Notes: generated by a model not told the origin, from the letters alone. A DNA stretch of 64,000 bases from Oculina patagonica (GCF_052425735.1 NC_135768.1:7812001-7876000); one strand, 5' to 3'. Shown: positions 1,374 through 26,800, counted from the first letter of the stretch. Numbers and translations: made by a program.

Positions 1374-1593
1374 ATGCAGTGCGAAAAGCCCGCTGGAGGA
1401 TTCCTAAAAATCATTTTGGTAAGTTTGCAGGTTTCAAGCGTTTTACTTCAAACACCATAACACAAGTTAACGAATCACCGCTGCCAAACCAACCGGCTAA
1501 CTTAACTATTCTGTGATCTTTTACAGCTATTAAAACTATTGTTGGCGATTTCGCTATGGACAGAAGCGGCCCGATACATACAGACTGCAAGAG
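1374..1593 (+). CDS. Gene A exons 1-2 (1374-1418, 1527-1593): signal peptide
   Basis: ATG...TTG|GTAAGT, 108-nt intron, TTACAG|CTATTA...AGAG|GTAATG. The joined product has a hydrophobic core (FLKIILLLKLLLAISLW), and its phase-1 end matches the CUB exon. Confidence 0.75.
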
Positions 1594-5141: not shown

Positions 5142-5173
<32 letters not shown>

Positions 5174-5652: not shown

Positions 5653-5687
<35 letters not shown>

Positions 5688-8600
5688 TTTTTTGGAAAAA
5701 TTTTTAAAAAACCATTTTTATGTTGTTAGAAGAACGTTTTAGCCGTTTGACTGACGTCTGTCAGTTTAAACACCATAGTCGTTTGAAAAAAGTCCCTCGT
5801 AATCTCCCCAGCAAGGGTAATTTAGCTCAAATAAATAGACGCGGTTTGGAGAAGTTAGAGCTAGCACTGTTTGGAGAAGTCAAAGAAAATAGGGGGGGAG
5901 AGAGGGTGACAAAATTGGTCCTAGCTATCTTTCAAGCTCGTTCACCTTCCTCGTCTACGCTCCTTTCCAAACCGCTTCTAACTACGCATTATTTTTTTAC
6001 TTTATCTTTCTGTATTTCAGTTGGGTCATCAAAGGAGACTATAACGCCAAAATCAACATCACATTTCACGACTTTGACTTGGAATTGAGCAAGACATGTC
6101 TTCCGTATGATTACGTCAAAGTATCAGACATGTGTAACAAGTCAAAGACTTGGTCAAAGAACCTGGGAACAGGAGACAACGAAGATGGATACTGCGGCAA
6201 TATGACTTCGTTTACTGTCACATCACGCTGCCAGAAAGTTCGAGTGCAGTTTAAATCTGATGACTCCATAACGGGAAGAGGATTCAACGCCACCTTTGAG
6301 ATCATTCCTGTTCCAAGTGAGTCGAAAAATCATTAACATTGGACCAATCGATCTGACTAGCCATCCATCCCCCCTCCTTCTCTCCCTCCTTCCCACCCTC
6401 CCGTCCCCCTCCGTCCGTCCATCCGTCCATCCATCCGTAGATCCAACTACNNNNNNNNNNNNNNNNNNNNNNNNNNNNNNNNNNNNNNNNNNNNNNNNNN
6501 NNNNNNNNNNNNNNNNNNNNNNNNNNNNNNNNNNNNNNNNNNNNNNNNNNNNNNNNNNNNNNNNNNNNNNNNNNNNNNNNNNNNNNNNNNACTTACCTAC
6601 CTACTTTCCTTCCAACCCACCACCNNNNNNNNNNNNNNNNNNNNNNNNNNNNNNNNNNNNNNNNNNNNNNNNNNNNNNNNNNNNNNNNNNNNNNNNNNNN
6701 NNNNNNNNNNNNNNNNNNNNNNNNNNNNNNNNNNNNNNNNNNNNNNNNNNNNNNNNNNNNNNNNNNNNNNNNNNNNNNNNNNNNNNNNNNNNNNNNNNNN
6801 NCCTACCTACTTTCCTTCCAACCCACCACCCACCCACCCACTTACCTCCCTNNNNNNNNNNNNNNNNNNNNNNNNNNNNNNNNNNNNNNNNNNNNNNNNN
6901 NNNNNNNNNNNNNNNNNNNNNNNNNNNNNNNNNNNNNNNNNNNNNNNNNNNNNNNNNNNNNNNNNNNNNNNNNNNNNNNNNNNNNNNNNNNNNNNNNNNN
7001 NNNNNNNNNNNNNNNNNNNNNNNNNNNNNNNNNNNNNNNNNNNNNNNNNNNNNNNNNNNNNNNNNNNNNNNNNNNNNNNNNNNNNNNNNNNNNNNNNNNN
7101 NNNNNNNNNNNNNNNNNNNNNNNNNNNNNNNNNNNNNNNNNNNNNNNNNNNNNNNNNNNNNNNNNNNNNNNNNNNNNNNTTCTCCATACTTCCTTCCCTC
7201 CCTTGCTCCATGCCTCCATCCATCCTTGTCATGTATCGTTTGTTTGTTACAATAATCTGACATCTTTTTCGTGCCACGGTTTATTACAGAGCCACCGGAG
7301 ATACTAACATTCTGCCTCGTTGGTACCAAAAACTGTTCAGAAAGTCTGGTTGTAACGGAAACCTTCGATGAGACGCTGAAGTGCGAGGTATCAGCATCTC
7401 CAGAGGCACTGGTCTATTGGTCTTATCTCGGATCAGATCGCAGGAATGCCAATCAACCACTCGACACCCGTGAAAGGCGCATGATCGACAATCACGATGG
7501 AAGTCTACGGATAAGGGGCCTTAGGAGAAATGACACTGGGTATTACAGGTGTTATGCGAATAACTCCGAAGGAGACGACGAACTTGTGATGCATTTGCGC
7601 GTGAAAGGTAAACTGGGGATTGTCATCTTCCAAATTCTCTTCACAAGTCCCTATATACTTCTTATGGCAACAGTGGGGAGAATTCGATGTTTAATATCAG
7701 TGCTTTTAGTAATATTGTTTGTATACTGGATTTTAATTGACTTTTTTTATTTATTTAAATCCACCTTGAAGCTGAAAAGTAGAGAATAAACTCCATGGTA
7801 ATTTAAAGGGCTGTAAAGTAACCAGTTTGTCAAGGTTTCCTCGGTAATTTGCTGGTACCAGTTGGGTTCGGTAGCAGCTCTAGCAAGTCTCACATGAATG
7901 GCTCGCTATCCTTCGAGAGAACAATAAAACGATAGCAGGAACAATGCCTCTAGCCCTAGAAATCAATAACAACTGCTACGCTAGGGGACTAATAGAATCA
8001 CAAGTTTACGAGAGCTGTTACACTACTGCACCAATTTATACCCTTGGGTAGAAAGAGGTGCTGTAAGAAAATGGTGCTGTGTTCAAAAGCAAACAAGGGC
8101 CTTAACTGCAATTACAGACAAAAATCCAACACCCTAACCATAAGACCATTAAGTGCCTCACTCAATGATTAAAGGATGTACATTTAACGGACCTAAGTCA
8201 GCCTCCGCTATTTCCGATACCATCAATATTATGATAACTGTATGGTAAAGCGAAATCTTATTGCATTGCTGTAAGTTGTATTACTTGAACTCTGGTTAAT
8301 TACCTTTAGCAGTTTCACAGAGATATTTTTCGTTTAGACACACGTAAATATAATATAAAATATTAATATAAGAAATATAAATATAATACCAAAACTCTCG
8401 TATGTAATAAACAAAAACAAAGACGCGGCTGACTAGGGTCCTTTAAGGAAATACTGTCATCCTTTTCTCCAATCTTTTTTTTTCTTTGGTTTTCAGAGAA
8501 GTGCAAATGCCCCAAGGTTATCAAGGCTAACTGGTACGACATTCCACCATACATTCGCGACGAAGGATCCGACCGGGAACCCTCTGGCTTATTCCCGATG

Positions 8601-10647
8601 CTTCTCCAAACAATCATTCCACTGTGTTGTGGAAACTGCTCGGAGGGCGACGGTCCGTCATCGATCTCCTACATCGACCAAAAAGAAAACCTGGTAGCCA
8701 TCAAAAATATCCGCAACTTTGAAACTGATGACACGATAACGTTTCCGATCAGTGGCAAGAAGGAGGATCGTTTTTATCAGAATGACTTCAAGTTTATGCC
8801 CCTGGTAGGCTCGCCTGGCGTTGCTTTTATTGTTGTTGACGAGCCACCTGGTACTTCAGCCAACGCCGTGTTCCAATCTGTCCTGTCTGGTTGGCCTGTG
8901 CTTCTTCTCACGCTCATGATGGCCTTACTGTCCGGGATAATTATGTGGGGACTGGTAAGTACGATTCAATCTTGAACACACTCCCCCCTTCCCCGGTCTT
9001 AACTTTTGCTAGGATATCCCCGGCTTACGTGACTGATGAATAAATGACCTAGCTCCCATAAGTTTCTTAAAGCTCAGAGGTCGAACGGCCGACCGTTGTG
9101 CAAAAGGCTATAGATTATATTCTTCTTGGAGTGAAATCTATAACCTGGACTATTTGTCCTTACTAAGTTATGGATATCTCTTTCTCAGTTTATTTATTGC
9201 TTGTGTCTGCGGCGACCACTGTAGTTCTGTCATCTTGAACATCCTCTTCCCCTGTCTCTTGTAGCATCCAGTCTCCCACGACCGAGATCACCCTCACTGA
9301 GATTATCTTGAAGACCCACAATCACTGAGTAAGGAGATTGCATGTTGATATTGATGGAATTTTTTTACCATGATTTTGTTTTAAAGGACACGTGGTATAA
9401 CCCGGACGAGTTTCCGAGGTCGTTTATCAAAGGCAGCGGAGAAGGTTTCTGGTGGGCTTTTGTTACTATGACAACCGTAGGGTGAGTGCTATCTTAAAAT
9501 ATATTTGCAGAGAAAAGTTTTCTCAGCTTACTTCGTATTCTTCTTTTCAAAGAAGACCTGGTTAAAAGAAGAAAGCAACTCTCCAATAAGTAGTTAGTGT
9601 TGTACATTTTTTTTTTTTTGCTACATATTTTTTGGTCAGTTGAATAACAATTCTCTGCTACCTCGTTTTGTTACAGTTATGGCGATCGATCTCCTCGTGG
9701 ATTTGTGGCTCGTATTTTTGCGATAGTCTGGGTTCTCGTTGGCCTCGTTATCACGTCCATTTTCACTGGTGTTGTGACTACTTCCTTGACAGCCATAACA
9801 CTGAGTACTGACGTCAAACTGTATGGTACTAAGGTGGGTTCCAGCCGTGCCCTTAAATTTAGCTGTTATGCATAGAAACTATGAAACCATTTAACAAAAA
9901 GATGATTATACACTTTCCTGGTACTGTTTATAATACCTGTGCAGCTGAGTTAACAGACGAAATCTTAGCCTGTGACCATTTACACGAAAGCTATAAAGCA
10001 GTACTTTCATAGAAAATACAGCCAATCAGAATACAGGAAAGCCGTTGTATATTCGACGGTATTCAACCCAACCTTCCCATCGTGCGCTGCGATTGTATTT
10101 TCGACGAAATTTAGTAAGCGTATTTTCTATGGCATGGTATAAAATAGTTACACAACACTTTCTCGTTGTATACTATGGAATATCCCACGAGTCACTTGTA
10201 TTTTCTTGGTATACACACGAGCCTTTAGGCGAGTTTGTGACTCGTGGGATATTCCATAGTATACCACTCGAAAGCGTTGCATAACTAGTATATACAAGGT
10301 GCTTCTAACTTTTAAGTCAGTGTATGAATTCCTTGTGTGCGGCCATTCCGAACAACGTTAGATTGGCACTGGTTAAAATGCCGCAATAGGTGGATTTAAC
10401 TTTTTTTTTTAATTTGCGTCTGTGGATAAAAACATCAAGCGTGAAGAATAGCCGTTATTGATTTCATTATTTTGAGTAACACTTTTGACATCAAAGGCAG
10501 TTTGTTGGATAACTCGCAGTAGATGTTATTTTATCCTTGCGTTATGGGTGATCATGTTTTAGTAATAGTTCGACTTAATCGCCGACCGGTTAGCTCAGTT
10601 GGTAGAGCGCCGGACTACCGTGCGAGAGGTCTCGGGTTCGAGTCCCA

Positions 10648-10688
<41 letters not shown>

Positions 10689-13600
10689 TATGCTGCCTTT
10701 GCAATGACATCTGCAAATGGTTTGATATTCTAGTCTTCTCGGATAAGGACGATAAACCGTAGGCCCCGTCTCCTGCATCTTCAGTGTCACGGTCAGCAGG
10801 GGACGTAAAAGAACCCACACACTTATCGTTAAGAGAAGGGCATGATGACTTAAGTTAAAGTTACAACTTTTTTGTTACAGATTGCAGCAGTGGCTAACTC
10901 TACCGAGTACCGGCTAGGACTGAATAAAAATGCGAACATGACAGGTTCGTGTTCACTAAGTTTCTTTGGGTTCACGTGTCTATTTTAACTCCAAAAATGA
11001 CTTTGATGTATCAAAAAAAATTAGGGAACAATGCCTATACGTAAGTAATAAGAGATAAAAAGCAATTTCAAGTCAGATTTCGGAGGTGGAAACGTTTAAT
11101 ATATAAGCAGTGATATCTAACACTTAATGACTGGTCTTGAGGGAAACAGTTAATTTTGTTTGCCGAGATTCTAGGGAAACAGAATCAACTAGTTTCCCGA
11201 GGTACCAGTCATTAAATTATTTGTTATGTGTTAAATATATGAAGACCTGTTAACCTTTAGTCACAGAGTTTAACCTTCCGTAAACGAAACCGTCGTTGTG
11301 TGCGACTATTCAATGTTAAGCTTTTGAGCAGTTCTTTCAAATAGTGCTATTTGTCTCTTGAGAACGAAATTTGGATTTTTTTCTCTTTCTCATTTGGACA
11401 TCTTGAGGATTAAAGGTTAGTTATACTTGCATTTAGCCCTATTCTGCGCAGCATGTTGGGCGAGTCACAACATGATGCGTAGAATAGGGCTAAATGGAAA
11501 GAAATAGTTGTTGCCTCATGTCTCACAAGGGATGAAGAGTATTAAGTAAGTAACGAAGTCTACATGCACTGACATGTGTTTTTACTATGTGATTCTAATC
11601 TCACAGCATATCACGACTTACAAGCGATTGTGGAACCTCTGAAGAATCGCGAAAATGGCTTGAAGGGAGTGTTAGTCGACACTTACGTCGCTGGCGAAAT
11701 GTCAGATTTTTCCAGCGAGGAGCTACGTGTCAATAAGATCATTGATCACAACTCGTACTACGGTATTGTATTTGGAGGAGGGAAGCTGGAAGGAAGAGAA
11801 TTTCAAACCTGCTTCGAGGATTATGTCCTGTCGAATCAAGCTGACATCTTTGAGACTGTGAAGCAGAACACTCAACCCATGAGTGTAAGCTTTTTATATA
11901 CATTCATTATATAAACTGCAGTGGTGTGGCGAGTGATAGCAAATCGAGAAAAATGGTATCACACATGTGTGGATAAAAATGATATCCATACATGTGTGTT
12001 ATCATTTTTGACCAATCAGCTCGCAGAATTTGCCATGTTTCAATGTGAAACATCCTCATGTTTCAAGTCGAAACATCTTCGGATCTTCCTCGGCAATCTT
12101 CGGAAAACTTCGGAATCACTCGTACAACCTTACGACAACATTCTAAAAATTTTCGGAAATCTTCTGAAAATGGTCGGGAATCTTCGGAAAATCGTCAAAA
12201 ACATCGTAATTAGTAGGTTTATCCTCTATTACTCATTGCGTTTAGGGTTATGATTGCTTGGAACGACGATGGTCCAAAATGTCGCTCAACGCCATTCTTT
12301 GATAAAATAATATGCCCTAAGTCCTCTATTTTTATCGTTGAGAAAAGCTGAGAGGGGAGAAATTGGACTAAAGTAGCTTTCATTGTGTTCTTGTTTCGTG
12401 ATTGTGAATACGTTCAAATCTAGATATGTTCGGACCATTACATATCTCGGACATCCCAACAGATTCGTTCTGTTCAAAGTTTGAATTCAATTTTTTTCGT
12501 AATTATGAATGGCTGAGCTACTGAGCGAGTGCGACCCCTAACTCCCTTTACCGGAGAAGAGAATAAGGAGTTGGTAGTGACTTTTTTTCCAGGGAGTACT
12601 GTAGCGTAACTGTCCATTCAGTAAAAAAGGCGTGTAAGCGTCTTACGCGTCCATCTGTCTATTTCTACAGGAACCGTCCGAGAGCGCAGCAGTAGAACGT
12701 TCATCCGGGTTATTTGACGCGACCTCTCCCTTGTTCCAAAACGCCATCTACACGTGCCTCGGCCTGCTGCTGTTTTTTACGGCTTGTGGCATTATCTGGG
12801 ATTACGGCTATATGAGGCATTGGAAGAAAAAAGCAGAAATGGGTAAGACCAACGGGATTTTTAAGAGGATCATAAATTTCTCCCCGCAGTTTTTGTGGCT
12901 TTTTCGGCTAGTGTACGTTACAGGAAATAGCTATTGATACATAACGAGCTCTGTTTGGCTACCACTGACATTCATCTTTGGGAATAACATATTATTAGCC
13001 ATTTTTACTCCTGGGTGGAGAATAGTATTATAGTGAGAGTATTGTGTCTTGCCCAAAAACACAACATAAGGCCAGTGGCCATTACCCAAACCCGGACATT
13101 TGCATTTACAATCCAACACGATCTCCACGTACAGTCAACTCCTACTATTACTGACACCTTCGGGACCACGATTTGGTGTCCGCAATAGAGAAAATACGTA
13201 GTGGCGGGAGGTATTTTCAGTAATTCTTATTCGCCGGGATTAAACTCTTTTCCCTAGTAAGGCGGTGTCCGTAAAAGCGAGGTGTCTGCAAGGCGGGAGT
13301 TGACTTTATTCTTTTAAAGGCACACAAAACCATGTGTGTATGAAGCTAAGTGATAAACTACATTTACTTTACTTTGCATATCATGTGGAAATGGCTGTTT
13401 CACAGTTTTGCAACAAATATATCACGATAAACTTCGAATTCTTCATTTCTAGCCATGGAAATTTTGCCGTATCTTGCATTTCCAAAATGACTGACAAGCT
13501 GTCTCGCGTTGCATTGCAGATGAGCTTGAACTGCTCGGTGGACCTGGGTACGAAATGGCCAAGAGGAACCTGGACATGATGGATGCCTTGATGCAGGAGG

Positions 13601-13695
13601 TTCAGGAGTTTTACGAGAACTGGACAAAGAGACTCGACGATATCACGAATAAACACGAAGAAGAACAAAGGATACAAGCCAAGCAGAAAAAGTAG
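1374..13695 (+). CDS. Gene A: CUB-Ig-fused, iGluR-topology channel with K+ selectivity filter (GluR0/AvGluR1-like), 738 aa, 12 exons
   Basis: Manual model join(1374-1418,1527-1593,5336-5426,6021-6316,7290-7607,8497-8954,9387-9481,9677-9833,10881-10944,11607-11884,12671-12842,13520-13695). All introns are GT-AG, phases are compatible, and the total is 2217 nt, open to TAG. Signal peptide MQCEKPAGGFLKIILLLKLLLAISLWTEA, then CUB, Ig, S1, M1, WWAFVTMTTVGYGD, M3, S2, M4 and a coiled coil. Confidence 0.88.
5142..5173. repeat. (ATC)n microsatellite
   Basis: About 10 perfect ATC units. Confidence 0.95.
5336..6316 (+). CDS. Gene A exons 3-4 (5336-5426, 6021-6316): CUB domain
   Basis: C...LTGDRGNFTSPG..GYPNNTNCSWVI...INITFHDFDLE...C.YDYVKV.D...YCG...VRVQFKSDDSITGRGFNATF is the classic CUB consensus, including the Tyr/Glu/Asp/Asp Ca2+-site signature. 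Confidence 0.93.
6361..7222. repeat. Pyrimidine-rich (CCAT/CCTA/CCCA) microsatellite region with three N runs (6451-6590, 6625-6801, 6852-7179)
   Basis: The flanks and islands between the Ns are simple repeats. It lies in gene A intron 4. Confidence 0.85.
7290..7607 (+). CDS. Gene A exon 5: immunoglobulin (I-set-like) domain
   Basis: LKCEVSASPEALVYW...DGSLRIRGLRRNDTGYYRCYANNSEG shows the B-strand Cys, C-strand Trp and D-x-G-x-Y-x-C motif. Phase 1-1 exon. Confidence 0.93.
8497..9833 (+). CDS. Gene A exons 6-8 (8497-8954, 9387-9481, 9677-9833): S1 lobe, M1, pore helix and TTVGYGD filter, M3
   Basis: WYDIPPY...GLFPMLL...CCGNC...GVAFIV; M1 WPVLLLTLMMALLSGIIMWGL; EGFWWAFVTMTTVG|YGDRSPRGFVARIFAIVWVLVGLVITSIFTGVVTTSLT. 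Confidence 0.92.
10143..10289. repeat. Palindromic interspersed element (non-autonomous)
   Basis: Inverted arms GTATACTATGGAATATCCCACGAGTCAC / GTGACTCGTGGGATATTCCATAGTATAC, with outer AGTTA...TAACT. Confidence 0.7.
10581..10843 (+). mobile_element. tRNA-derived SINE with V-domain-like body
   Basis: A box TAGCTCAGTTGGTAGAGC and B box GGTTCGAGTCCC, followed by TCGGATAAGGACGATAAACCGTAGGCCCCGTCTC...GGACGTAAAAGAACCCACACACTTATCGTTAAGAG, which resembles the V-SINE core. Confidence 0.75.
10881..13695 (+). CDS. Gene A exons 9-12: S2 lobe, M4 helix, cytoplasmic coiled coil
   Basis: IAAVANSTEYRLG...GVLVDTY...YYGIVF...QTCF (S2); AIYTCLGLLLFFTACGIIWDYGY followed by the basic stop-transfer RHWKKK (M4); LMQEVQEFYENWTKRLDDITNKHEEEQ, then TAG at 13693-13695. 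Confidence 0.88.
13132..13307. mobile_element. Tc1/mariner-type MITE
   Basis: TA-CAGTCAACTCC...GGGAGTTGACTT-TA terminal inverted repeats. Confidence 0.6.
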
Positions 13696-15944
13696 AAAAA
13701 GCATTCACCGTAGTTTAGAAATATGTTCGCTCTATGAGTTGCATAAAACCACTTGCACAATTTCATTCATGATCACAACTCGACGATAATTTGGTCCGCT
13801 AATTTAAATATTGAATAGTCGAAAATAAGTCGATGACAGGTCGTTGACAATCGGCGAGTATTAGGCGACAGATAGTCGAGCAAAGCCCTTCACTAAGTGT
13901 TCACCACAGGGGCCATGATTTGAGAACAGCTTCAGGTACTGTCGGAAAGGAGTCGGTAGCCGGTCGGTGAACAGTCGATGGCATTCGGTGAGTGTCGTAA
14001 GATGATCCAGCGACTTTCTCGTCATTGTCTTTTTTACTTTTATAGAAAATACGTAATGAAACATAAAAATGCACCAAATGATTTTAGTGATTTTTTTCAA
14101 CCAAATATAATCTGATTCGGTATGGGAGGTAAAATGTAGAAACGAATCTGGAACTTTTAGTGTTTGAAGACGAAATTATTTTGCACATGTAAAACCAAAG
14201 ATCGAGTTATGATGATCGCAAGCTCTTTTACCTTTATTGTTGTTATTGATAAAGGGTTGAATGAGATTCATAGTAGGTAACGGAAATGAGGCTTGGTGAA
14301 GTCGAAAAGTGTTTCCACTCTAAAAGTCAATTTGTGTTGAACGTCAAATTTGCCTCCATGGGTTTTAAAGAAAGCAAAAATTTAAAATCACAAATATATA
14401 GCTTTGTATTAACGTTTGAGATAGTCTCCAAAGGGGTTTTACACTTACCCTGTTATAACAGAAATTAGAATTTCATTTCTCCTTAGGAGAACACTATAAA
14501 ATCAACAAGTTGATTATGGGAATGTAGAAGCTGGCCACCAAGAGAAAATTGTTTTGATATATAAATAAATTCTCCCAACTTAATTATAATGTAAGAAATG
14601 TACGGCGTACAGTAAGGGGAGAATACGTGTTGTTCAGTCAGCGAGTCATTAGGAGGTGGCCATTTTTATGAAGGCTTTGTTGTGATGTATTTGCGTTGTT
14701 TGCTGTTAAAAAGAAGCACATTTTAAGGATCCGAGTTCTTGCTGAAGGAATAGTTGAATGAAACAGATAGAGAATAACTGAATAGGATTAATGTAACAAA
14801 GAGATTTTCTTATTCATGTTTTGAAGTTTTGAAGTTTAAGGGTGCTGAGTACTTCATATAAATTATTCAAATTTTAAGGGTGCAACTCTGTCCAAAACGT
14901 TGACATTTCAAGGAAATATCACTTTAAGTTAACATTAATTCGCTTTTTTTCTGTATTTCTTCAGTACGTACACGGGTGTTGTTGCATTACATGCTATACC
15001 GTTGCCACTCAATTATGTTCTAGATTATTTCTTGACACCTTGACGTTCTGTTAAAGGGCAGTCAAAACCAATGTTGATCTAAGAGGTGTAGATAACTAGC
15101 ATGAAATATCGAAGGACTTTTGTCGCATGTTCGAAACCGTTTACATTCTGAGACAAAACGTCTGAAATTCGAGCAGACAAATTTCACGTTGATAAGGCTG
15201 TTCTGGAAATGCGTCAGGTTAGTCAAGTTGAATAACTTGATAAAAACGAAAGACACAATGCCAAAATGTCAAAAATTAATGAAAAGTAGAATAATGAGTC
15301 GCAACTGTACAATCCATTTTTCCATTTTTCTGATTTTATTCTTGCGTCTCCAAGACCATTTATTAGTTAACCCAACCAGTTGTAAATAATGTTTTAAACC
15401 ATCATTTCTCTTTATAGATTTGCAAGATAGAATATCTAAGGCAATGACAGCTTCAGAAAATGTTTTGCAATCCTTTTTTGCTGTAAAAATTCCTACATGC
15501 TCCTTCACTTTGATTTAATGTAGCATTTTTATCTATACATAAAGGCCCAACCTTTTTTCACTGCCAGTGAGAAGTGCGACGTCGTTGCTCCTAGTGAGAA
15601 GATTTAGGCAAAAATAAAGCAAACTCAAAATTCCCTTGGACTTTTCAGAGAAAATCATTCACACACGTTAAGAGAATTGTCAAGTAAGGAGCACCAGGGC
15701 TGTAAGGTTAATAATAACATTACTTGGGTTTGGTTCGGTTTTAAGTTGACTGTGCTCTGTAAATGTTTAAAAATATTATTTACTATGATCTTGCCACTCC
15801 TTACAATTTTTTAATCCATCACTAGCAAAATCAAAACCAATCCTGACTGTTACTGTGATCGTTTTCTCGCATCTGATACCAGTTACATTGTTTTTACTTC
15901 TTCTTTTTACTTTTTACTTCTTTAGTATTGCTTTCATAGACTAA

Positions 15945-16688: not shown

Positions 16689-17271
16689 TAATGTAATTAT
16701 TTTGGATTTGGTTTCGCCACCGTCATCAGAAAACCACAATATTATTGAATGGGTATTCCTTCAAGCTAGCTGAAAAGTCTAGTTTACAGCTATTCATTTC
16801 TTAGAGTAGATCTCTAAGGAGCAAACTTCAGTCGGGGATAATAAGTTGTTTTTGGCGGACATTGATCGATTGAGCCCACGGTTTGAGCCAGGATATGCTA
16901 AGCAATATGATGTGTCGTCATAACTACACGCTGCCGTGTGATTGGACAAAAACGATAGGAAATGTTCCTGGTCTGTGCACGAAAATTTGCTTAAAACGAC
17001 GCTTGTTTCCCCCGACTGGACTAATGCTATACTTGAACGTAATATTTGTACGCCTTCTTTTGTCGAGGGCTTTTGATCTTTATATCATTATTTATTCGTT
17101 TGTTTAAAAGGCGTTGAACGTCAGTAATTTGTATCACCTTGTTTAAAATCATCAACACACGCTTTGTAAATAAAGAAACATGTTCACTTCTAGTACTCGA
17201 GATATTTTTTTTTAACTTTGTTTTTCGATTTTCGTTAAGTGATGGGATGTAAAGGTAGAGTTTACATCAAA

Positions 17272-17731
17272 TATAGTGGCCCATACAGGCCAGAGCTTAT
17301 CCCGGTTTCAGTAGCATGAAGCGACAAGGAGTATTTCTACTCCCTCTGGATGGAATGCTAGTCCATCGCAGGGTTACTCCCCAGCATTAGTTCGCTTGTA
17401 CCGATTTATACACCTGGGTGCAGAGGGGCACTATGAGTGTAAAATGTCTTGCCCAAGAACACAACACAATACCCCGGCCGGGCTCGAACCCAGAGTCCAG
17501 GGCCCGGTTGCATAAAAATACTTAAGATTATGGGGGATTTTCTACAACAGCTCTCTGCGTTCCGGTGAATGTTTTCAAAGCGTTTTGTTTTTTCCAGTAC
17601 TCTTTAGTAAAGTTTCTCCTTATTTATCCTGATAAGCACGGGAGAAAACCCCTCAGAGCACAGGGAATAGCTGCAGAAAATCCCACGTAATCAACCGGGC
17701 CCACCGCACTAACCATCAGGCCACCACGCCT
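17272..17731 (-). mobile_element. tRNA-derived CORE-like SINE interrupted by a 203-bp MITE (17500-17702)
   Basis: The minus strand has a tRNA head (GGCGTGGTGGCCTGATGGTTAGTGCG...GGGTTCGAGCCC) and GTGTTCTTGGGCAAGACA...CACCCAGGTGTATAAAT core. The insert is bounded by GGGCCCGGTTG / CAACCGGGCCC. Confidence 0.8.
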
Positions 17732-20144
17732 AAGCGATGGTATCTACATGGTGATCACTGATGGTACATCGATGGTGATATTAGACGATAAGGATTTATT
17801 GGGTATAAAAAAAGTGCTGTTGCTCCTAAACGGGCATGGGCACCCCTCCGTTCTTATTTCAAAATTTAAGTTCCTATAACATAAACAATCAATAGGCATA
17901 GTTTAACAAACTTCTCAGTGCAGATTCTATTTCAGTGGAATGACCTTAGAAAAACGGCACGCGGTCATTTCTCGGCAGTTAAAATTTGACCAATTCTAAG
18001 CTAAACCCCATCCAGTTCCCCACCAGTTAAAAAATGGCTTTTTGCTCCACCAAAATCGGGACATGCGTTGTCTTTTGAATTGGTGGCTTAGCCCCTCGAG
18101 AGATTAACCAATACGATAATGACAGTTTGCAATCCTGTTTTTTTTTTTTATTATAGCGTTTTATTGAATAATTATCTGTTACAGTTTACGGTATTGTACA
18201 TATTATTATTTTTTGTTTGTTTGCAAATTAAACAAAACTGTTCAGTTTTTAATTTTCATTGTTTCAGTTCACGGTAATAAATAGGGAATAAGGGAACTGA
18301 TAAAGAGCTAACAGGTTTTGAAAAATTAAAACCAGAAAGAGTTTAAAGTAATTCCCAACATAAAAAATTCATTTCAAGCAATTTCTGACCAGCAGTTATT
18401 CCAGTTATTTATATATGTTACAACATATAATTTGAGATTTCACGTATTTGCAAAATAGATTTCTATATACAGCATTTCATAAATTTAAAATTATAGCATT
18501 AAATCATTTAGCTGTTACATTTGTTACCCATCACCACACATAACTAAAACATTTAGACATGTAAAGGGATATTTATATACTACCTGTCATATATTTTACA
18601 CATCACTTCAAGCCTTACATAAAAGTAGCACTGCTGTTGACTTTAAGCTATTTTTTACAACTGTAAAAAATAAGTTTAGAAAAGCAATAAGTTTTAATGA
18701 ACAAGATATCTGACAGAGTTTCATACTTTAAAATGTTACTTTCATGTTTCATATTTCTGGTCTACGATGTAAACCATTTGCATCCTCGCCAGTATCCATC
18801 CTAGCCTATTTATGGACTGATTTAAAATTTTTTAAACTTTTCTTCTCGTAATCTTGCTCAAAGTCGACAGTGCTTCTAAAGTATAAACTAAATCTGCTTG
18901 AAGCATTTTCTAAAGGGTCCTATGCCTATTACTTCAAGGAAGTCCTATTCGTCATTTGAACACAAATGAATTCTTTGATATTTACTGTGTTTTTTTTAAC
19001 ACCCGTTCCTTATGGATGTCCTTTCATCTTTGCTACTTTGGGAATTTGTGGATAAGACGCTTTAAGGATTGGGCTTCGAATATAACATGCGGGGAGCGTA
19101 AATAATGATAAAGCTTATTCTTAACACAAGATGTTAATATTATACGATAATACTTGTTGTGTAACATTTTGTAATGGTTAATTTCATAACAATCGCAGCC
19201 CTAACACTGACCAAAATCTAATTTCACCTTAACGTCAATATACAAAGCGAAGCATACAGATTTTGAAAAAACAGCAACCGATCACTTAGGGAGTGTTTTC
19301 GGAATATCGAGTTTAAATTTGCTATTAAGTTATTCTAAACATAACTACAAGAAATGAATGGATATTTGGAAGTAGAATTTATGTACGTTTGCATCATGGC
19401 TTACAGGGTTAAAATCTGACAAATTTAAAAACAGCATGGTTACTGACACTATAACACAACAAGAGATGATGAAGTGGGACACAATCAATTTCATTGGCCA
19501 CCATTTTAAACAATCAGAACTTATGTAAAAATGACGTCACAAGCACTGTATGTAATAAGTTTAATCGAAATTGGTAGTATCTAAGAATTGAAGTTCGACT
19601 GAGTTTCTGAAAAAAAGGAAGTTCTTATGCCACTCAATCGATCACTTGAAAGTACTGTTAGTATATTATGGAGAAGACTATGACAAAGTAAACTTATTCA
19701 CAGTGCTCGGGGGTCATTAATGCCACGAACTGTGGTTCGTTGCTACCTGGCTACCAACCCTCCCTCTAAAACAGAACAATGTACATCCTATTTTCAATAA
19801 TTTTGCTCCATTATCTCGACATTTAATAGATTGAACCTTTACTCAACCTTTACTAAAGGCCTGGCCATGCATGCTAAATACAGCTTCCTTGCGTACCCTC
19901 TTGACGTCATGGCTCGACTAGCCCCTGGTCCTCACATTGTTTGGTCTTTTATCCACCCGTGAGTGAAATTTTTAAACTGCTTAAACTCGGTAAGGAAAAT
20001 ACAATTTCCCGTCACGAAGCACCGTTGCTATGGTAACATTCGAAATCTAACTCCCAGGAGACAAAAACACATCGCAGCAACGTACAACGGATATAACAGC
20101 TGTAGTAATTGGCATATTTCATTGCGACACATTGTCACTTGTTG

Positions 20145-23100
20145 TTATGGGACTACCCCGTTAACATATCTCACAATGCTTCCTCTAATAGGGAACCCGA
20201 ACACATTCTTTTGAACGTTTCCATTCGTAGCTTCAACATCTCCTTTTTCAGCCTGTTCTTGTTTCAGACGCGCCAATAGTCGTAATTCTCGTCGATGTTT
20301 CGCTTTGAGATTTTCCAGCCTCAAGCGACAGTTTTTGTGGAAGTCTGTTAGTATCTTTCTCATCGTTTCTTTACTGTTATTGTATTCGTAGAAAGGGTCT
20401 TCCTTTCTGCCAGATTCCAAGTAGTCACTGTATTCTAGAAGTTAAGGTACAGAAAGGAAATATTTTAATTATAAATTGCCAGTTTTTTAAGAATATACAT
20501 TGGTTACACATATCTTTGCGTGACCATGCCCCTTGGTTTTTGCTAGTAATTTTACTTACAATGTGTTTGGTTTGGAAAGCTGGTATTTTAAGCTGTCATT
20601 CATTCTCCCTACGGACATAAGCTGTGCAATTTTCGTAGGAATTTGTCCAGAGAGACGTGACATTTCGGCAGTGGTGACCTGTTTTCCGTTTCTTTCTATT
20701 TATATCAGCCTCGTCCCAAGGGCGCTCTTCTCTTCAAATTTGGAAGACCTTGGAAGGGCCACTTTGAAGGGAAAAGCGCCCTAGAGATATAAGAGCCTCC
20801 TGTGGATAAACTACCATGATTCGTTAGCGTAGTTGCACTTTCCATTTATGTGGAGAAACCGGTGAGAATATTCCGAAGATGGACAATTTTTAAAGGGACA
20901 GTACAATTTTTCAACCAACACAATGGCATGGGGCAACTTCTTACCATTTGAAAACTTTTCAGTAGAAAGAACTGTTCTATTTCATTTCCTACCATAACAT
21001 CTTTCATCGGGAAGCATGGTATTAGTGCGAAAAAGCAAAATGGTACAGTTGTATTCTGAACATTCCAGAAAAAAAAGGGAAAAAAAGGAATTCCTCTGAA
21101 GGTATTCTATTTTTCCGAACAGTGGAAGGAACCGTTCCATTTGATTTTTTTACCGAAAAAAAAACAGGTTTCTTCGCACAAATGGAAAGCGCTACAGCAA
21201 TATGATATGCCGAGAGGGCCGGTATGGGCTGTATGATAAAAACAAGTATCTTACCATATCTTCTTGGATTTGGGTTGCGTTTCTTTCGGGTAAGTATCTC
21301 ATACACCAGGAAAATAACTGTTAATACAGCTAAAGAGCCTCCGCACCACGTGATAGTCTGAATGTAGACAGGAGACTCCGCGTCAAACAACCCTTCTGTA
21401 ATGTCAGCGGCTTTGTCTTTCTGTAATCCCTGCAATAGTCCAAACAGATAATTAAATCAATTCTCCGTGAGTGCATGCATGTGTACTTTTGTTACTCTTA
21501 CTCAAGTCTGGTGTAGTATTAAATACAATGCCTAGGTTCGAGGCTGCGCTCATTTAACCACAATTTATTCTCGTTCGTAAGAGACTTAAAGGGCGTGCGG
21601 CAACCAAAGAATAAAAACACCACGATCGCTACCATCACCCACAGCAACAAATCAACAACAGTAGATGTATAGTAAATGGTTTGAACCCAGGAGTATCAGT
21701 AGGTCGTATAGTGTGATCGTCCGGGTGAAAGTAGTTCTGAGAAGAGCTGTTGTCGGTGACTGACGTTTCGACAACCTGAGCAGAAGTCATCTTCAGAGTC
21801 AAGTGAAAAGTTGTTGTCAGTCGATGATGTTATAAGTCTGGTCCGTTGAAGTTGATTAGTCAGTTTAGCCGTGATGTTATTGGCTGTAAGACTGGTGTAA
21901 AGTTTGTCATCAGTAATTGGTCAGTTTCGATCCGTCTATTGTTAGTCTACTTAAGTCGTTTTGTTAAGTCTACTAACAATAGACGGATCGAAACTGACCA
22001 ACAGTTGATGTCATAGTTTTATCCAGAACTTAACGCTCGTATTACTGCGGCGACTATTTTCACTGTATCACGTGTTCACATGTTCAGCCAGTTTAGAAAG
22101 GTAATCTTTAAAAACTATGTCCTTACGTATGTACTTGTGACTTTCAGTACATTGTTTCGACGTAGGTGATATAATCGTGATAAAATAGTCGATCAAAGAA
22201 GGAAATGAAGTTAATACCATAGCTTTTAATTTTCAATTACATTAACATACTGAAAATGTTCTTTTTTTTTGGCGCTATGTTGCTAGATAAAATACCGACG
22301 TTTCGGCATTATCGCTCTGTCTCTCCGGAGTTCAAAACAAAAAGCTAAGAGCCAGTTGCTTGAACCTAAAGAAGTCAGTTGTGCCGAAACGACAATATAT
22401 CGCTGAAAACAAAAAAAAAAACAATTAATCTTTATTTTTCTAGTTCAACACGCTAAGTAGTTAACATCGTTATTAATTTCTATTACCGTAACTCCCTGGA
22501 CATTGTTAGTGATGATTTCAAACGTAGACGCTCTCTCCTCTTTGAGAAAATCTCGGAAGCACTTTTGCAGCTTTCTAGCATGCCCGGCCATGACGACCCC
22601 GTATGCCGAGGGGTAATTGATCATTTTGGTCATACGAAGACCTCGACCCCTAAATAATTCCATGCGACTTCCTACAGTGTAAGAATCTATGAGAGCCCCG
22701 TCCACGTGTCGGTCCGTAAGAGATTTGGCCAAGTCCTCAAGTGTCGTATACCGTCGCTCTGAAATGAAATAAAAGAAATATTTAATAACTCGACTACTAA
22801 TTTAAAGATAGAGACTGTACAGACAGTTCTTCGAGTTTCACACACAAGGCGATCGTCAGACTGTGCATTAAGTGCAGTCTAAAGAAATTTTAAACTCATG
22901 GAGGACTGTTAGTCAGAGAGATCCTTCTTCTGATTGGCTGTTTAAAATTTAGTTTCGTGCCTTCATTTGGTGATCAATTTAGATCTCTTTTTAAGCAAAG
23001 TAGATCTGTCAGCAGATAGAATATACAGCTTCTCCGTCATACATAAGAGTCTTCCTAGAGTGCATGATAATCTCAATGTCTTCATTAGAAACGGTGGTAA

Positions 23101-23859
23101 ATTGCCTCGCGTAGTCTAGGGCTTCAGAAATGGACGGGTAGAAATCAACTATATCAAAAATCAGGAAGGTGTGCTGGCTCTTGTCTTCTATACTTGAGAA
23201 CCAATTGACAACAGAGCGTGTGTTCCTCCATTGGAACTCGACTACGCATTTTTCACAGTGTACGTTCGAGCAATGAAGGTTCAAGTGGAATCGGAAGCCA
23301 CGGGCGACTTGTTTTACTCCAAACAACTGGGCATTTAAAGGCGTCATTTCTATTGTCTATAAGAGTGTATACTATAAAAGAATGTCGTCGATTTGTTTTT
23401 TACAATAATAATAAAACTTTATCAGCGAGAATTTTCAGAAACGTTTAAAATCAGCCAATTTACTTTCATAACCTTTCGGTTTTCGTTTATTGGGAAAGGC
23501 CGCCAGTTCTCAAGTTTTAATTGAGTTGCATTATGGTTCTCATCAGCGATAGCTCTCGACCTATGAGGACGCGAGAATTTTGCCAGTTACTGTAAAAAAT
23601 TTAAGTATTATTGCCATGAAGTCATGTCAAATTTTACTCTGCAATTTATTTTCGTGAAGGCTTTCGAAACGTCTTTTTTTAGAACTCTGAAGTGTTGTGT
23701 TGTTTATAAAACTTTTCACTTGACTTCTTCTAACAAGACCAGATACGAGTAAAACATACTTTGTCAGAAGGGAACACGATTATAATACTTACCTCGATCC
23801 ATTTGGGCATTTAGTCGAATTCCAAGACGAAATTCCGCTGAATCATCAATGGCAGAAAC
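20145..23859 (-). CDS. Gene B exons 17-20: S2 lobe, M4 helix, cytoplasmic coiled coil and tail
   Basis: VSAIDDSAEFRLG...DGALIDSY...AYGVVM...QKCF (S2); TITWCGGSLAVLTVIFLVYEIL then TRKKR (M4); MRKILTDFHKNCRLRLENLKAKHRRELRLL, then TAA. Confidence 0.88.
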
Positions 23860-26800
23860 CTTCGAAGTGCAGGCAAGAAATAAATAGATTAAAAAAAATT
23901 AAATTAAATAAAACGTATAAACTTTCACCAAAGGGCACCATAGCCACACAACAAATGGCTGACATTTATTTTACCATCTTCCAATGATTTCAATCAATAT
24001 GATAGTATGTGCCACAATTTTGTTCTGTATTTACTGCTATGACGGCTTTCGAATCCAAATAGAAAGAGTGAAAACTTTTCGTTTTATGAAACGCGAAAAT
24101 TTTCCATTTTCTTTAAATAAGCTTTAAAGAAGATCAGCGAAATGTACCAATAAGAAGATAAAAACGTACGGTGTTGAACCATTATGTTTACAATGGAAAC
24201 CCGTCTTACCGTCTTACTATTGAACGGGAACTCCTTTTAATAATAAGAAGAGAAATAGATTATGCAGCTTGCTTATGTCAACTTACTTTCGAGCCATACA
24301 CGGCGATGTCTGATTTGATGATGTCCATAGTCAATGACGTAGTTATGAATGACATCACAAGCGCAATGATAACTAAGCCACACGTGATCCACACGATGCC
24401 AAACAACTTGGAGTGTATGCCGCGGGGAACACGGTCTCCATATCTTCAAAATATCACCAACACTATTGTTACAAACGAAAGTCCTCTTTGCAGAAGAGAA
24501 CAAGCTTAAAACATTGCATCAAACAGCTGCGACATTGCACACAGCACTGTCTGCATCATTTTCACTCGTTTTTGCTAAACTCTACAACATTTTGCGCAAA
24601 ATTGCTGACGCGGCAAGCAAGTTCTGTCCCCAGTTGCACAAAAGTTGGATAGTGATTTATCCGTTGCTTAGCGTTATCCATCCTTTTGTCAATCAAGGAT
24701 AGATTTTTACAACTGATAAAACCCAAATTGGCTACGGTAGAGACAGACAAGCAGCTTCCTCTTGGTACTTTTGCCTGAAGGTGGAGGAGAAAGTTCTAAA
24801 AAAGAAACATTAACGTCTTTGGGTTAGGGTCTTGACAGCTAGAAGTCAGGTAATGGCCGATAGTTGTGCCTCGCCAATTGACGGCAGCAACACAATATTG
24901 CAGATTTTGGACACACGTTGGTGAGCGGTTGCAGTTTTACAAAATAAATGTTTCACTGTGTGTCCGCGCGTTGTGGCTTTATCAGGTTTACCCTCTTTTT
25001 AAGCTTATTGATTGACGTTAGTCACTCACCCTACGGTTGTCATGGTTACAAATGCCCACCACATTCCTTCAATTGGTCCCCGCATGGGAGAGGATGGGAA
25101 CTCGTTGCTATTGAAAAAGAAGTCCTGTTGAAATGACAGAAATATGGTTTTGTTAGACTCAACTGATTTTAAATGTACTTCTGAAGTAGCTATTTTCACA
25201 TTCGTCGTCACAGGCTTTAAAGCAAAAAAGAGACTGCTCTGTTATAAAAAAAAAAAGAGTGTACCCTACTCCCCCAGCAAAAACACAGCAGCGACAATTA
25301 AACAAACTCACCATAAACCACATAACGATTCCAGCGAAAAACGCAGAAATGAAAACAGTCACGATCAAGGGCCATAAGTCAAACACAGCTTTCACCACCA
25401 TTTTGGCAGCGGCTCCTGGTTCATCTGCAGCCACTATAAACGCTACTCCCGCCGATTGAACCAGAGGCGCGAAACCATACTCGTTAGAATAATCCGTTTG
25501 CTCCATCCGCCCATAAACGGGAAAGCTCAACTCAGTCATATCACCTATTGCCTCTCTGACGTCTTTTTCGGTGTCTTTTATAGCTGACGTGTTTGGTCCC
25601 GATGCGCGATAATCAATATCGGTGTAGCCGTGCTGACGACACTCTCCACAGCAGCTGCGCACGACAAGGTGCAGAATTGGCGGGAAAATTCCCGTGACGT
25701 TATCGTTGCTTCCTTCTGCCATATATGGAGGGTTGAGCCAATAGTTTGTGTATAGTTTTCTGTAGCAATTACAGGTTTCTGTAAATAACAAATAATAAAT
25801 ACTTTGATACAAATGAACTATAGAAACTTCATGGGTTGCGAGAGGTTTGGAACAGAGAAACATACTTTACTTAGTTTATTATGCTAATAAACGCCTTTGT
25901 ATTAGCATAAACAGCACGCACACATTAAAAGTTGACATGAAAGTTTTAATAGCAGTGCATTTCTCTTGTTATATGGTGAAGGAATGCTCAAATCGTTCAA
26001 TGTTCGTATGATGGTAAGTGATGGAAGACATATTTGTTTTTAGAGCAATTTATCACGCCAGAAGCCGTCATTTTCCGTGATGAAATGCATAAACGTCGTT
26101 TGGAATGTTCGTGCCTCGCATTTGATATTTGTTTCTTCAGCGTATTATAAATCTGGCCACTGTTTTCAAAAATGCCTAACTCCATAAGATAAGTTTCTTT
26201 GTCGAAACTCGTTTTACATATATCTTTAATTTAAAAGTTTTGTCAATGTCTTTTGATTTGAACCGGTCGGCCTGAAGCAGGTATAACATGGCCAGCAGAG
26301 TCGGCGAATTTGTATTTAGTACAGTAAGCATGCGTTCGTTAGGCAATAGTAAGCTAACCCGCACGTGCGCCCGTAAATAACTGTTGTCAGTATTTCTTCT
26401 AAGTCAGAGATAAAACCTCTTCGAAGCCATGAAATGTTACGAATAAATAATAAAAGAATTGGGCTCGACTAGTTTTGATTTATTGATTTCCAAATTGTGA
26501 CAAATTTGAAAATACACGCGAAAAATAATCCTAAATTGTTCTAAGACCCGCCTCGTAAACAAAACAGTTGAGGCTGGCTTCATACTTAATTTAGTCAGTC
26601 ATTGCTTTTCAAATGCCATGCTCGGCTCCTCAAGGTTTTTAATTGTTATAGATCAATTCAATGGCTTTAAAAATGGTCGACTCCACAAAATTTGTTTCTA
26701 ACATCGAAAGAAAAAATCATTTCAGTGCATGATAAGATTAAGAAAATAAAATTGAATTATCTTTACCAGCGAAAATGACTGCAGAAGGCGTCCCGTTTCC

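Follow-up and report, generated by a model that had tools for sequence, protein, structure and literature searches.

Neighbouring genes of Oculina patagonica join the same glutamate-receptor-like, potassium-filter channel cassette to unrelated extracellular domains

Introduction

The bacterial channel GluR0 is not known to have a last membrane helix or an ectodomain, and the rotifer channel AvGluR1 carries a normal amino-terminal domain. Neto1/2 and SOL-1 are CUB-domain auxiliary subunits of glutamate receptors, that is, separate proteins acting in trans. Adhesion GPCRs and receptor-type tyrosine phosphatases join a conserved signalling core to long N-terminal module arrays that vary among paralogues, and FN3, Ig, LamG, TSP1, CUB, pentraxin and SEA-like modules occur in these arrays. 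GluR0 and AvGluR1 are reported to combine a binding-protein clamshell with a pore that has a K+ filter signature (Chen 1999, Janovjak 2011). The signature of exon shuffling consists of class 1-1 modules together with phase-1 introns at signal-peptide cleavage sites (PMC8001218).

Here we describe a window of 64,000 nt from Oculina patagonica (GCF_052425735.1 NC_135768.1:7812001-7876000), the whole stretch of DNA that was analysed, in which two adjacent genes, A and B, encode the same six-exon glutamate-receptor-like potassium-filter channel cassette with unrelated extracellular domains. The channel family to which they belong is large and much older than a single local duplication. The case is probably one of textbook class 1-1 (phase-1) exon shuffling; the recipient channel family appears to be new to the literature, as far as this could be searched.

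Results

Exon maps of the two genes

Channel exons were located by scanning for open exons flanked by AG and GT that had the lengths and phases noted in a first-pass annotation, and the resulting map is given in Table 1. All twelve channel exons were found at the claimed lengths with AG/GT borders, and the claimed phases 1,0,2,0,1,0,1 are true of both genes. The two-exon signal peptide was also as annotated in A and B, with an intron of 108 nt (phase 0) in A and of 100 nt in B. When A and B are aligned globally (36.8% identity), four of the first five shared introns lie in the same columns and the fifth within two columns.

Table 1. Positions in the window of the exons and exon groups of genes A and B.
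Feature	Position	Strand	Length (nt)	Phase	Basis
A exon 1, ATG and first part of signal peptide	1374..1418	+	45	0 out	ATG...GT, AG-ended intron
A exon 2, remaining signal peptide	1527..1593	+	67	1 at end	Nematostella orthologue also 67 nt
A CUB exon a	5336..5426	+	91	1 to 2	tblastn against P0005 CUB; AG/GT borders
A CUB exon b	6021..6316	+	296	2 to 1	Pfam CUB E = 1e-12; borders
A Ig exon	7290..7607	+	318	1 to 1	Pfam I-set/Ig_3 E = 1e-10; borders
A channel exon 1, S1 lobe and M1	8497..8954	+	458	1 to 0	scan; RNA joint 8954/9387
A channel exon 2, pore helix to T-T-V-G(2 nt)	9387..9481	+	95	0 to 2	scan; RNA
A channel exon 3, (G)YGD and inner helix	9677..9833	+	157	2 to 0	scan; RNA; Pfam Ion_trans_2/Lig_chan
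A channel exon 4	10881..10944	+	64	0 to 1	scan; RNA
A channel exon 5, S2 lobe	11607..11884	+	278	1 to 0	scan; RNA
A channel exon 6, S2 end and last membrane helix	12671..12842	+	172	0 to 1	scan; RNA
A last coding exon, helical tail (cytoplasmic) with stop codon	13520..13695	+			RNA joint 12842/13520; translation
B exon 1, ATG and signal peptide	38643..38693	-	51		
B exon 2	38503..38542	-	40	1 at end	
B LamG-type exon	35514..36155	-	642	1 to 1	Pfam Laminin_G_3 E = 3e-11; borders
B exon with six TSP1 repeats	33844..34899	-	1056	1 to 1	Pfam TSP_1, six stretches, E = 2e-53; borders
B three-exon unit, TSP1 to FN3	32142..33385 (33385-33276; 32710-32640 or -32658; 32284 or 32287-32142)	-		1-0-2-1	
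B six FN3 exons	26767..31598	-		each 1 to 1	Pfam fn3 E = 7e-9 to 3e-15; borders
B FN3 exons 1-3	31598-31299, 30800-30504, 30126-29821	-			
B FN3 exons 4-6	29014-28709, 28056-27754, 27072-26767	-			
B channel cassette, six exons	21255..25778	-			AG/GT scan; Nematostella orthologue exon lengths
B channel exons 1-3	25778-25312, 25124-25030, 24443-24287	-	467, 95, 157		
B channel exons 4-6	23859-23793, 22758-22487, 21429-21255	-	67, 272, 175		
B last coding exon, cytoplasmic tail	20145..20434	-			phase-1 acceptor at 20434, open frame to stop

The six junctions mapped for A (8954/9387, 9481/9677, 9833/10881, 10944/11607, 11884/12671 and 12842/13520) were all present, with GT..AG borders, in spliced contigs from four runs of four studies, which we presume to be RNA runs. 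The contigs share about 96% identity with A, compared with 83% between A and its local paralogue, and are therefore A-type transcripts, either from close relatives or from alleles. A single spliced contig of 2253 nt spans exons 1 to 6 of the A channel, with a further 946 nt on the 5' side. The splice sites of B as mapped are predicted from sequence and orthology. Two further observations concern the map itself: an N-masked run (6451-7179) lies within the A intron that precedes the Ig exon, and a GC donor is present at the second FN3 exon of B.

Phase 1 was found at 13 of 13 unit borders of A and B, compared with 4 of 17 other introns (Fisher p = 2e-5), and the unit borders of the Nematostella and Hydra genes are likewise in phase 1. 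The claim that every ectodomain unit is bounded by phase-1 introns holds with one refinement, namely that CUB and the unit labelled SEA are split by internal introns; otherwise Pfam domains fit inside exon units. The CUB domain of A is interrupted by a phase-2 intron, and internal introns of some units are in phases other than 1, at positions that vary between species. The SEA label of the three-exon unit of B agrees with its position and with its three-exon layout, which parallels that of the SEA unit recognised by Pfam in Nematostella P0023 (three exons, 110/59/143 nt), but Pfam gave no match on these exons or on the orthologue's segment, and BLASTP detected no similarity to the SEA of P0023. 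A single-sequence model of the unit had a pLDDT of 38, too low for use.

A glutamate-receptor-type core with a potassium-channel filter

The core is an iGluR-type ligand-binding and membrane module, in the order S1-M1-pore-inner helix-S2-last helix, with the K+-channel filter TT(V/L)GYGD. Structural modelling supports an S1/S2 clamshell into which M1, pore and inner helix are inserted and which is followed by the last helix. The modelled member P0042, a bare protein (pLDDT 80.4), aligned with AMPA and NMDA receptors in their ligand-binding and membrane portions (about 430-450 columns, E ~1e-13), and a fold search with this model gave probability 1.0 for GluA1-4 and GluN chains, at 11-16% identity to the solved receptors.

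Among the 24 listed matches of at least 400 aa, 21 contain TT(V/L)GYGD; the other three are one bacterial false match and two proteins in which the pore was undetected, one of which (P0029) ends right after S1. Against a cut-off of 22.5 bits, Ion_trans_2 reached 38-57 bits in full-length relatives, 27 bits in the isolated pore exon of A and 22.7 bits in that of B. Lig_chan scores ranged from 22 to 36 bits across members against a gathering score of 30.8, which some members exceeded (P0043 36.2, P0023 34.3, P0045 33.1) and others did not; the pore exon of A alone scored 25. On the S1 and S2 exons Pfam gave no match even at E = 1, leaving the ligand-binding lobes (Lig_chan-Glu_bd / SBP_bac_3) unrecognised. 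No member had an ANF_receptor-type match indicating an LIVBP-like amino-terminal domain, and CUB/Ig, FN3 arrays or nothing were found instead. By filter motif and Pfam score, the pore is predicted to be of the potassium-channel type (Ion_trans_2), with K+-selective conduction being putative.

Conservation in Nematostella and Hydra

Annotated RefSeq proteins placed exactly on genomic DNA served as orthologues. The A-type gene of Nematostella has exons of 39/67/191/175/273/464/95/157/64/290/172/173 nt in the same phases as A, and its last exon has the same coding length as that of A (173 nt without the stop); the A-type exons of Hydra are 54/34/.../95/157/64/266/178 nt. The two-exon signal-peptide layout of A is thereby found in both species, as 39/67 in Nematostella and 54/34 in Hydra. 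A Nematostella cassette of the TSP1-SEA-FN3 type measures 476/95/163/61/269/166 nt.

For gene B, the last four channel exons equal those of the Nematostella orthologue exactly (157/67/272/175 nt, in the same places). The LamG-TSP1x6-FN3x6 array is collinear with that of the orthologue, P0089, over its entire length, each FN3 of B having its best match in its counterpart there, and the last exon of B is homologous to the P0089 C-terminus. P0089 is 96-100% identical to a convergent gene located 6 kb past the Nematostella A orthologue. The tail-to-tail arrangement of A and B is an old one, shared with Nematostella.

Paralogues and their ectodomains

At least 69 matches to channel exon 1 were present in the O. 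patagonica genome, of which 27 paralogues were examined for introns; local arrays of family genes are found on C10, C11, C13 and C14. A phase-1 acceptor lies directly before the x-C-x-C start of S1 in 27 of 27 paralogues. Where the respective exon was found, exon 2 measures 95 nt in 21 of 25 paralogues and exon 3 measures 157 nt in 11 of 16.

The annotation had predicted paralogues with other ectodomains, and these exist: the modules of relatives include pentraxin, LamG, F5/8C, MAM, TLDc, fibrinogen-C and SEA with FN3, and bare members have a signal peptide and the channel only. Among the 27 paralogues, about 23-25 have FN3 in the channel-adjacent exon; Ig in this position is confined to A and the neighbouring gene 89% identical to it, and SEA-FN3 recurs across several clades. 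The proposal that different 1-1 modules were accepted into one phase-1 intron is in agreement with the presence of this intron in all paralogues examined and with the existence of bare members. In bare L030, the sole bare gene with a readable start, the docking-position intron is absent and signal peptide and S1 form one exon. In L028, an own-genome relative of the bare clade, a phase-1 acceptor does occur, four residues upstream of the first Cys.

Gene tree and the relationship between A and B

In the channel gene tree, which is unrooted, CUB-Ig proteins, those of Nematostella and Hydra included, form a single clade (96/91), whose sister is the bare clade (97/93). Gene B groups with P0089 (100/98), and the B lineage groups with L006 (96/89). 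The module content of paralogues follows the gene tree, ectodomain labels requiring 5 changes versus a shuffled mean of 12.6. The CUB-Ig-channel architecture probably arose once, prior to the Anthozoa/Hydrozoa split, and both architectures are ancient, so that no recent swap took place here. Being unrooted, the tree does not separate the gain of ectodomains from their loss.

For the channel-proximal FN3 domains, 2 changes were needed versus a shuffled mean of 11.8, and their C-terminal ending is unlike that of inner FN3s, which suggests a single origin of the proximal FN3 on an FN3 tree that is itself largely unresolved. An ancestor with a channel-side FN3 array, perhaps with SEA, from which bare and CUB-Ig members were derived by loss, with CUB-Ig replacing the array once, would fit this clustering, the predominance of FN3 next to the channel, the recurrence of SEA-FN3 and the unrooted tree. 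We nevertheless regard it as rather unlikely: a root between the bare/CUB-Ig and FN3 groups brings no parsimony gain over a bare ancestor, a clade of all bare and CUB-Ig members withstands the AU test (p = 0.11), and no trace of FN3 was apparent in the open-frame listings of A.

The first-pass annotation had taken the matching exon architecture as a sign that A and B are a duplicate pair. This argument falls away, since the cassette and the preceding phase-1 intron are family-wide, being shared by all 27 paralogues, Nematostella and Hydra, and are therefore uninformative on A versus B. A single inverted duplication at this locus could still account for the pair, a signal-peptide-plus-channel gene giving rise to two copies that then took different modules, with A and B as each other's closest lineages. 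The two genes are tail-to-tail neighbours, also adjacent in Nematostella, and the family has clearly expanded by local duplication, as in the arrays described above. However, A and B are not sisters in the best tree, and forcing their lineages together costs 15 lnL units, a constraint that is disfavoured without formal rejection (AU p = 0.07). The two share only about 37% identity. We consider such an origin improbable.

A composite ancestral ectodomain with all module types, from which A and B arose by differential deletion, is very hard to reconcile with the single CUB-Ig clade and with the scan of 23 family proteins, in which CUB/Ig never occurred with FN3, TSP1 or LamG (0 of 21 filter-bearing, full-length or nearly full-length relatives). 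Finally, B was modelled from sequence and orthology, but a mis-joining of ectodomain exons and channel cassette from separate genes is hardly credible, given that the 2253-nt contig runs from upstream sequence through exon 6 in A, that annotated Nematostella and Hydra models unite the same parts with exact genomic mapping, and that the cassette begins in phase 1 and has neither its own start codon nor its own signal peptide.

Discussion

Our results make it likely that A and B separated long ago within a large cnidarian family, which diversified by docking-site exon shuffling and tandem duplication. The six-exon cassette would have remained nearly unchanged since before the Anthozoa/Hydrozoa split. 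The phase-1 intron immediately 5' of the cassette would have served as the docking site, and the two-exon signal peptide likewise ends in phase 1; what lies between these points is composed throughout of class 1-1 units, namely CUB, Ig, LamG, the TSP1 block, the three-exon unit and single-exon FN3. Units of this kind leave the reading frame intact whether they are added, copied or deleted. We infer that ectodomain diversity came from shuffling at this site and from the local tandem copying of entire genes. The CUB-Ig pair would have been installed once, in the lineage sister to the bare signal-peptide-plus-channel genes; most other members carry a channel-side FN3 array with variable modules N-terminal to it.

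This organization has the features of class 1-1 shuffled metazoan proteins (Patthy; PMC8001218): phase-1-flanked units, a signal-peptide exon ending in phase 1, mobile beta-rich modules (FN3, Ig, CUB, TSP1, LamG, SEA, MAM, F5/8C), and one core among paralogues whose modules differ. Here, in contrast, the recipient is an ion-channel core, and the terms 'ion channel' and 'glutamate' are absent from the text of the review (PMC8001218).

With animal iGluRs (AMPA, kainate, NMDA, epsilon), the family shares the bilobed ligand-binding domain, the M1-pore-inner helix insert and the last helix. It differs in having shuffled adhesion-type modules or nothing in place of the LIVBP-type amino-terminal domain, and in a filter of the potassium type, TTVGYGD, instead of a Q/R/N site. 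The cnidarian family was not found in those metazoan iGluR phylogenies that could be checked. GluR0 and AvGluR1 resemble it in joining a clamshell to a pore with a K+ signature, and the present family would be set apart from them by its fourth helix, its coiled C-terminal tail and its variable adhesion modules.

The core of adhesion GPCRs and receptor-type tyrosine phosphatases is unrelated, and their likeness to this family would be only an analogy in how genes and proteins are built. CUB occurs together with a glutamate-receptor-type channel in the Neto1/2 and SOL-1 systems as well as here, where CUB-Ig is joined to the channel in cis.

Gene models and transcript support

The window is intron-rich animal sequence (G000:C11:7812001-7876000, within a 529-Mb assembly), and the nearest protein relatives of its genes are cnidarian. 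Two of these genes, gene A, with CUB and Ig domains before a channel, and gene B, with LamG, TSP1 and FN3 units before a channel, are convergent, with about 6.4 kb separating the gene ends (window 13700-20145). A scan for open exons flanked by AG...GT and having exactly the channel-exon lengths and phases of the first-pass annotation recovered the expected exon in 12 of 12 cases; at the shorter lengths chance candidates were also found, and the choice among them was made by homology and order. The two-exon signal peptides described for both genes were likewise confirmed.

Features of genes A and B in the window
Feature	Position	Strand	Remark
Gene A	1374-13695	+	738 codons from summed exon lengths
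A, signal-peptide exons		+	45 + 67 nt; 108-nt phase-0 intron between
A, CUB, two exons	5336-5426, 6021-6316	+	Pfam CUB; internal intron phase 2
A, Ig exon	7290-7607	+	Pfam Ig
A, channel exons 1-3	8497-8954, 9387-9481, 9677-9833	+	AG...GT open-exon scan
A, channel exons 4-6	10881-10944, 11607-11884, 12671-12842	+	AG...GT open-exon scan
A, last exon	13520-13695	+	
Gene B	38693-20145	-	
B, signal-peptide exons		-	51 + 40 nt; 100-nt intron between
B, LamG	36155-35514	-	Pfam Laminin_G_3
B, six TSP1 repeats, single 1056-nt exon	34899-33844	-	Pfam TSP_1 x6
B, three-exon unit (first annotated as SEA)	33385-32142	-	phases 1-0-2-1
B, six single-exon FN3 repeats	31598 to 26767	-	Pfam fn3 x6
B, channel exons 1-3	25778-25312, 25124-25030, 24443-24287	-	AG...GT open-exon scan
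B, channel exons 4-6	23859-23793, 22758-22487, 21429-21255	-	AG...GT open-exon scan
B, last exon	starts 20434	-	

Transcript support for gene A was sought in public runs containing about one fifth of the words of 8400-13800, one fifth being about the exon share there; the runs were taken as RNA by guess only, and the spliced form of the contigs itself favours RNA. Contigs from four runs of four studies omit exactly the six predicted introns, and their joints (8954/9387, 9481/9677, 9833/10881, 10944/11607, 11884/12671 and 12842/13520, with GT..AG ends after shifts of the cut) match the junctions first proposed for gene A at six of six positions. One contig of 2253 nt begins with 946 nt 5' of channel exon 1 and continues through exon 6. 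Exon 1 of these contigs diverges from that of A by about 4%, compared with 17% between A and a local paralogue, so they represent transcripts of A type from alleles or from close relatives.

Several further features were observed in the window. Parts of gene A introns (9848-10390, 10572-10933, 11839-12381 and 13106-13467) carry very deep, heterogeneous contigs with many loose ends, their summed depth reaching about 80,000, which suggests copies of abundant transcribed repeats. Within window 6272-7304, the intron between CUB and Ig contains N-masked runs at 6451-6590, 6625-6801 and 6852-7179, bordered by a tandem repeat of 12 nt whose three frames all translate as (PTYL)n. The second FN3 of gene B has an apparent GC-AG intron at 30504 (GATG/GCAAGT). 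By eye only, 56183-56642 (-) and 58664-59298, 61702-61983 (-) include open frames resembling the C-terminal portion of a reverse transcriptase from a retrotransposon, as well as exons resembling a prolyl-4-hydroxylase-type 2-oxoglutarate dioxygenase.

The channel core

The pore region of the six-exon channel cassette matches Pfam Ion_trans_2 and scores around the cut-off of Lig_chan, and the two ligand-binding lobes have no Pfam match. An AlphaFold model of a relative lacking an ectodomain, built with a 21-sequence family alignment (mean pLDDT 80), aligns with AMPA and NMDA receptors across their ligand-binding and membrane parts, covering about 430-450 columns; the match has E ~1e-13, probability 1.0 and 11-16% identity. 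Of the 24 listed hits of at least 400 aa, 21 carry the filter TT(V/L)GYGD, in which the intron separating exons 2 and 3 interrupts the codon for the first Gly of GYGD. The three hits lacking the filter are P0029, which stops right after S1, and P0109, both without a detected pore, and P0015, a bacterial cadherin-like false positive that was rejected as a family member.

Phase-1 borders and the origin of the shared exon structure

All 13 unit borders of A and B are in phase 1, versus 4 of 17 other introns (Fisher p = 2e-5). Internal introns turn over, and unit borders remain phase 1. The claim that every ectodomain unit is bounded by phase-1 introns is upheld for the borders, and the label SEA was not confirmed: Pfam found no SEA in the three-exon unit of B or in the corresponding segment of its orthologue, and BLASTP showed no similarity between the unit and the Pfam-positive SEA of a paralogue. 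A single-sequence fold of the unit was too low for use (pLDDT 38), and all that the unit shares with the SEA unit found in a Nematostella paralogue (exons of 110/59/143 nt) is its position and the three-exon 1-0-2-1 layout.

The matching exon architecture of A and B had been read as a sign of a duplication of the two genes followed by an ectodomain swap. Among the five shared introns mapped in a global alignment at 36.8% identity, four do fall in the same columns and the fifth within two. The same structure was found in 27 paralogues of this genome, surveyed over exon 1 plus or minus 1.5 kb: all have a phase-1 acceptor at the same place, directly 5' of the x-C-x-C start of S1, and an exon 1 that ends after the M1 helix in phase 0. 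Exon 2 was found in 25 of them, with a length of 95 nt in 21, and exon 3 in 16, with a length of 157 nt in 11. Annotated proteins of relatives, mapped exactly onto genomic DNA, gave exons of 39, 67, 191, 175, 273, 464, 95, 157, 64, 290, 172 and 173 nt for the Nematostella A-type gene; 54, 34, 242, 148, 191, 124, 158+167+172, 95, 157, 64, 266 and 178 nt for that of Hydra; and channel exons of 476, 95, 163, 61, 269 and 166 nt for a Nematostella TSP1-SEA-FN3 gene. Phases are identical across the Nematostella and Hydra genes mapped. The agreement between A and B therefore reflects the ancestral structure of the family and no specific event between these two genes. With respect to individual introns, the one within CUB is in phase 2 in A (5426/6021) and in phase 0, much further 3', in the Nematostella and Hydra orthologues (exons 3/4), and the Hydra orthologue has its Ig exon in two parts and channel exon 1 in three.

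A tree of 49 sequences (S1 to inner helix, 244 columns, unrooted) places the CUB-Ig genes, namely A, its neighbour L002 and the Nematostella and Hydra genes, in a single clade (support 96/91), whose sister in this unrooted tree is formed by four bare genes consisting of signal peptide and channel (97/93). Gene B groups with its Nematostella orthologue P0089 (100/98) and next with L006, a paralogue on the same contig at a distance of about 105 kb (96/89). A constrained tree with the A and B lineages as sisters was 15.1 lnL units worse (AU p = 0.07), so that on this alignment such a relationship is disfavoured, though short of rejection. A single clade of all bare genes plus CUB-Ig was likewise not rejected (AU p = 0.11). 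Being unrooted, the tree is compatible with either a bare or an FN3-bearing ancestor. Channel-proximal FN3 exons cluster (2 changes versus a shuffled mean of 11.8, on an FN3 tree that is mostly poorly resolved and has the FN3 cuts of Nematostella P0023 on very long branches), and they have a common ending, unlike inner FN3s.

Ectodomain diversity and a conserved gene pair

This genome has at least 69 matches to gene A exon 1, many of them grouped in local arrays on contigs C10, C11, C13 and C14; 22 of the 69 are on C11. Five Nematostella members (P0005, P0023, P0043, P0064 and P0074) are all on one 22.03-Mb chromosome (OW051986.1). NCBI names the family proteins only "uncharacterized protein".

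Paralogues with other ectodomains, as had been predicted, were found among full-length and near-full-length relatives. Besides CUB-Ig-channel genes (Nematostella XP_048580338, Hydra XP_047138624 and others) and the LamG-TSP1x6-FN3x6-channel protein P0089, they include TSP1-SEA-FN3-channel genes, FN3-only arrays, very long forms with pentraxin, LamG, fibrinogen-C, TLDc, F5/8C, MAM and SEA plus 8-12 FN3, and bare forms with a signal peptide alone before S1 (P0042, P0112 and P0120), whose Atlas clusters are mostly cnidarian. Among the 27 paralogues of this genome, the channel-adjacent exon is FN3 in about 23-25 and Ig only in A and L002. The latter (G000:C11:7800227-7800682) is a CUB-Ig-type gene just outside the window, on the strand of A and 20 kb upstream of it; with 83% nucleotide identity in exon 1 and 89% protein identity over exons 1-3, it is a recent tandem copy.

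A bare gene occurs in this genome as well. In L030 (G000:C2:15393469-15396909), signal peptide, Ser/Pro-rich linker and S1-M1 lie within one 651-nt exon, and the downstream 0- and 2-phase introns are retained; several hits resembling it, which have long open frames, form clusters on C2, C6 and C8. L028 (G000:C11:431311-434526, -) is a relative of the bare clade, two of its exons being 57% and 91% identical to P0042. An extra intron divides its S1 exon, which starts from a phase-1 acceptor placed four residues ahead of the first Cys.

The pairing of A and B is also found in Nematostella, where a 1845-residue LamG-TSP1-... gene lies 6 kb downstream of the A orthologue on the opposite strand (OW051986.1, 2.02-2.06 Mb; gap L031:29187-35193, about 6 kb). 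By tblastn this gene is 96-100% identical to P0089; its channel exons of 157/67/272/175 nt are the same as in B, and B and P0089 are collinear from LamG to the C-terminus, every FN3 best matching its positional counterpart. The tail-to-tail arrangement is thus older than the divergence between this lineage and Nematostella. The DNA between A and B is not conserved with that of the Nematostella pair, and a 156-aa "gene" lying there was rejected as a low-complexity repeat with no counterpart in the window.

Discussion

Our results confirm the first observation and support its interpretation in part. They favour shuffling of exons into a conserved docking site, the phase-1 intron directly 5' of the cassette, and they bear out the predicted ectodomain diversity; the matching architecture does not itself indicate a duplication of A and B followed by a swap. 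The phase-1 pattern is what class 1-1 module shuffling is known to leave, and the phase-1 bias at signal-peptide cleavage sites belongs to the same established signature (PMC8001218; PMC1626468).

The family is large: besides the exon-1 matches here, Nematostella has many of its genes and Hydra has a CUB-Ig member. Its proteins combine a gating module of glutamate-receptor type with a perfect potassium filter and with ectodomains of adhesion type. It was not found in the metazoan glutamate-receptor phylogenies checked or by literature search with motifs, domain words and gene identifiers, an absence that suggests, and does not prove, that it is undescribed. The conserved cassette and docking intron provide a simple rule to find and annotate all members, the orthologue pairs (A and B with Nematostella, A with Hydra) are ready targets for expression and electrophysiology, and the family serves as a clean natural experiment for asking how far the extracellular part can be exchanged on a single channel core.

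We consider it a speculative and rather improbable reading that the docking intron made an iGluR-type, potassium-filter core into cnidarian "adhesion channels", with A and B as co-regulated partner subunits of a heteromer. If true, at least 10 kinds of matrix- or cell-recognition modules would be carried on one pore cassette.

The exon-phase pattern is an ordinary, textbook mechanism, and the recipient core is unusual: compared with usual glutamate receptors, it is without the usual amino-terminal domain and has a potassium filter. The proposed adhesion channels would be analogous to adhesion GPCRs.
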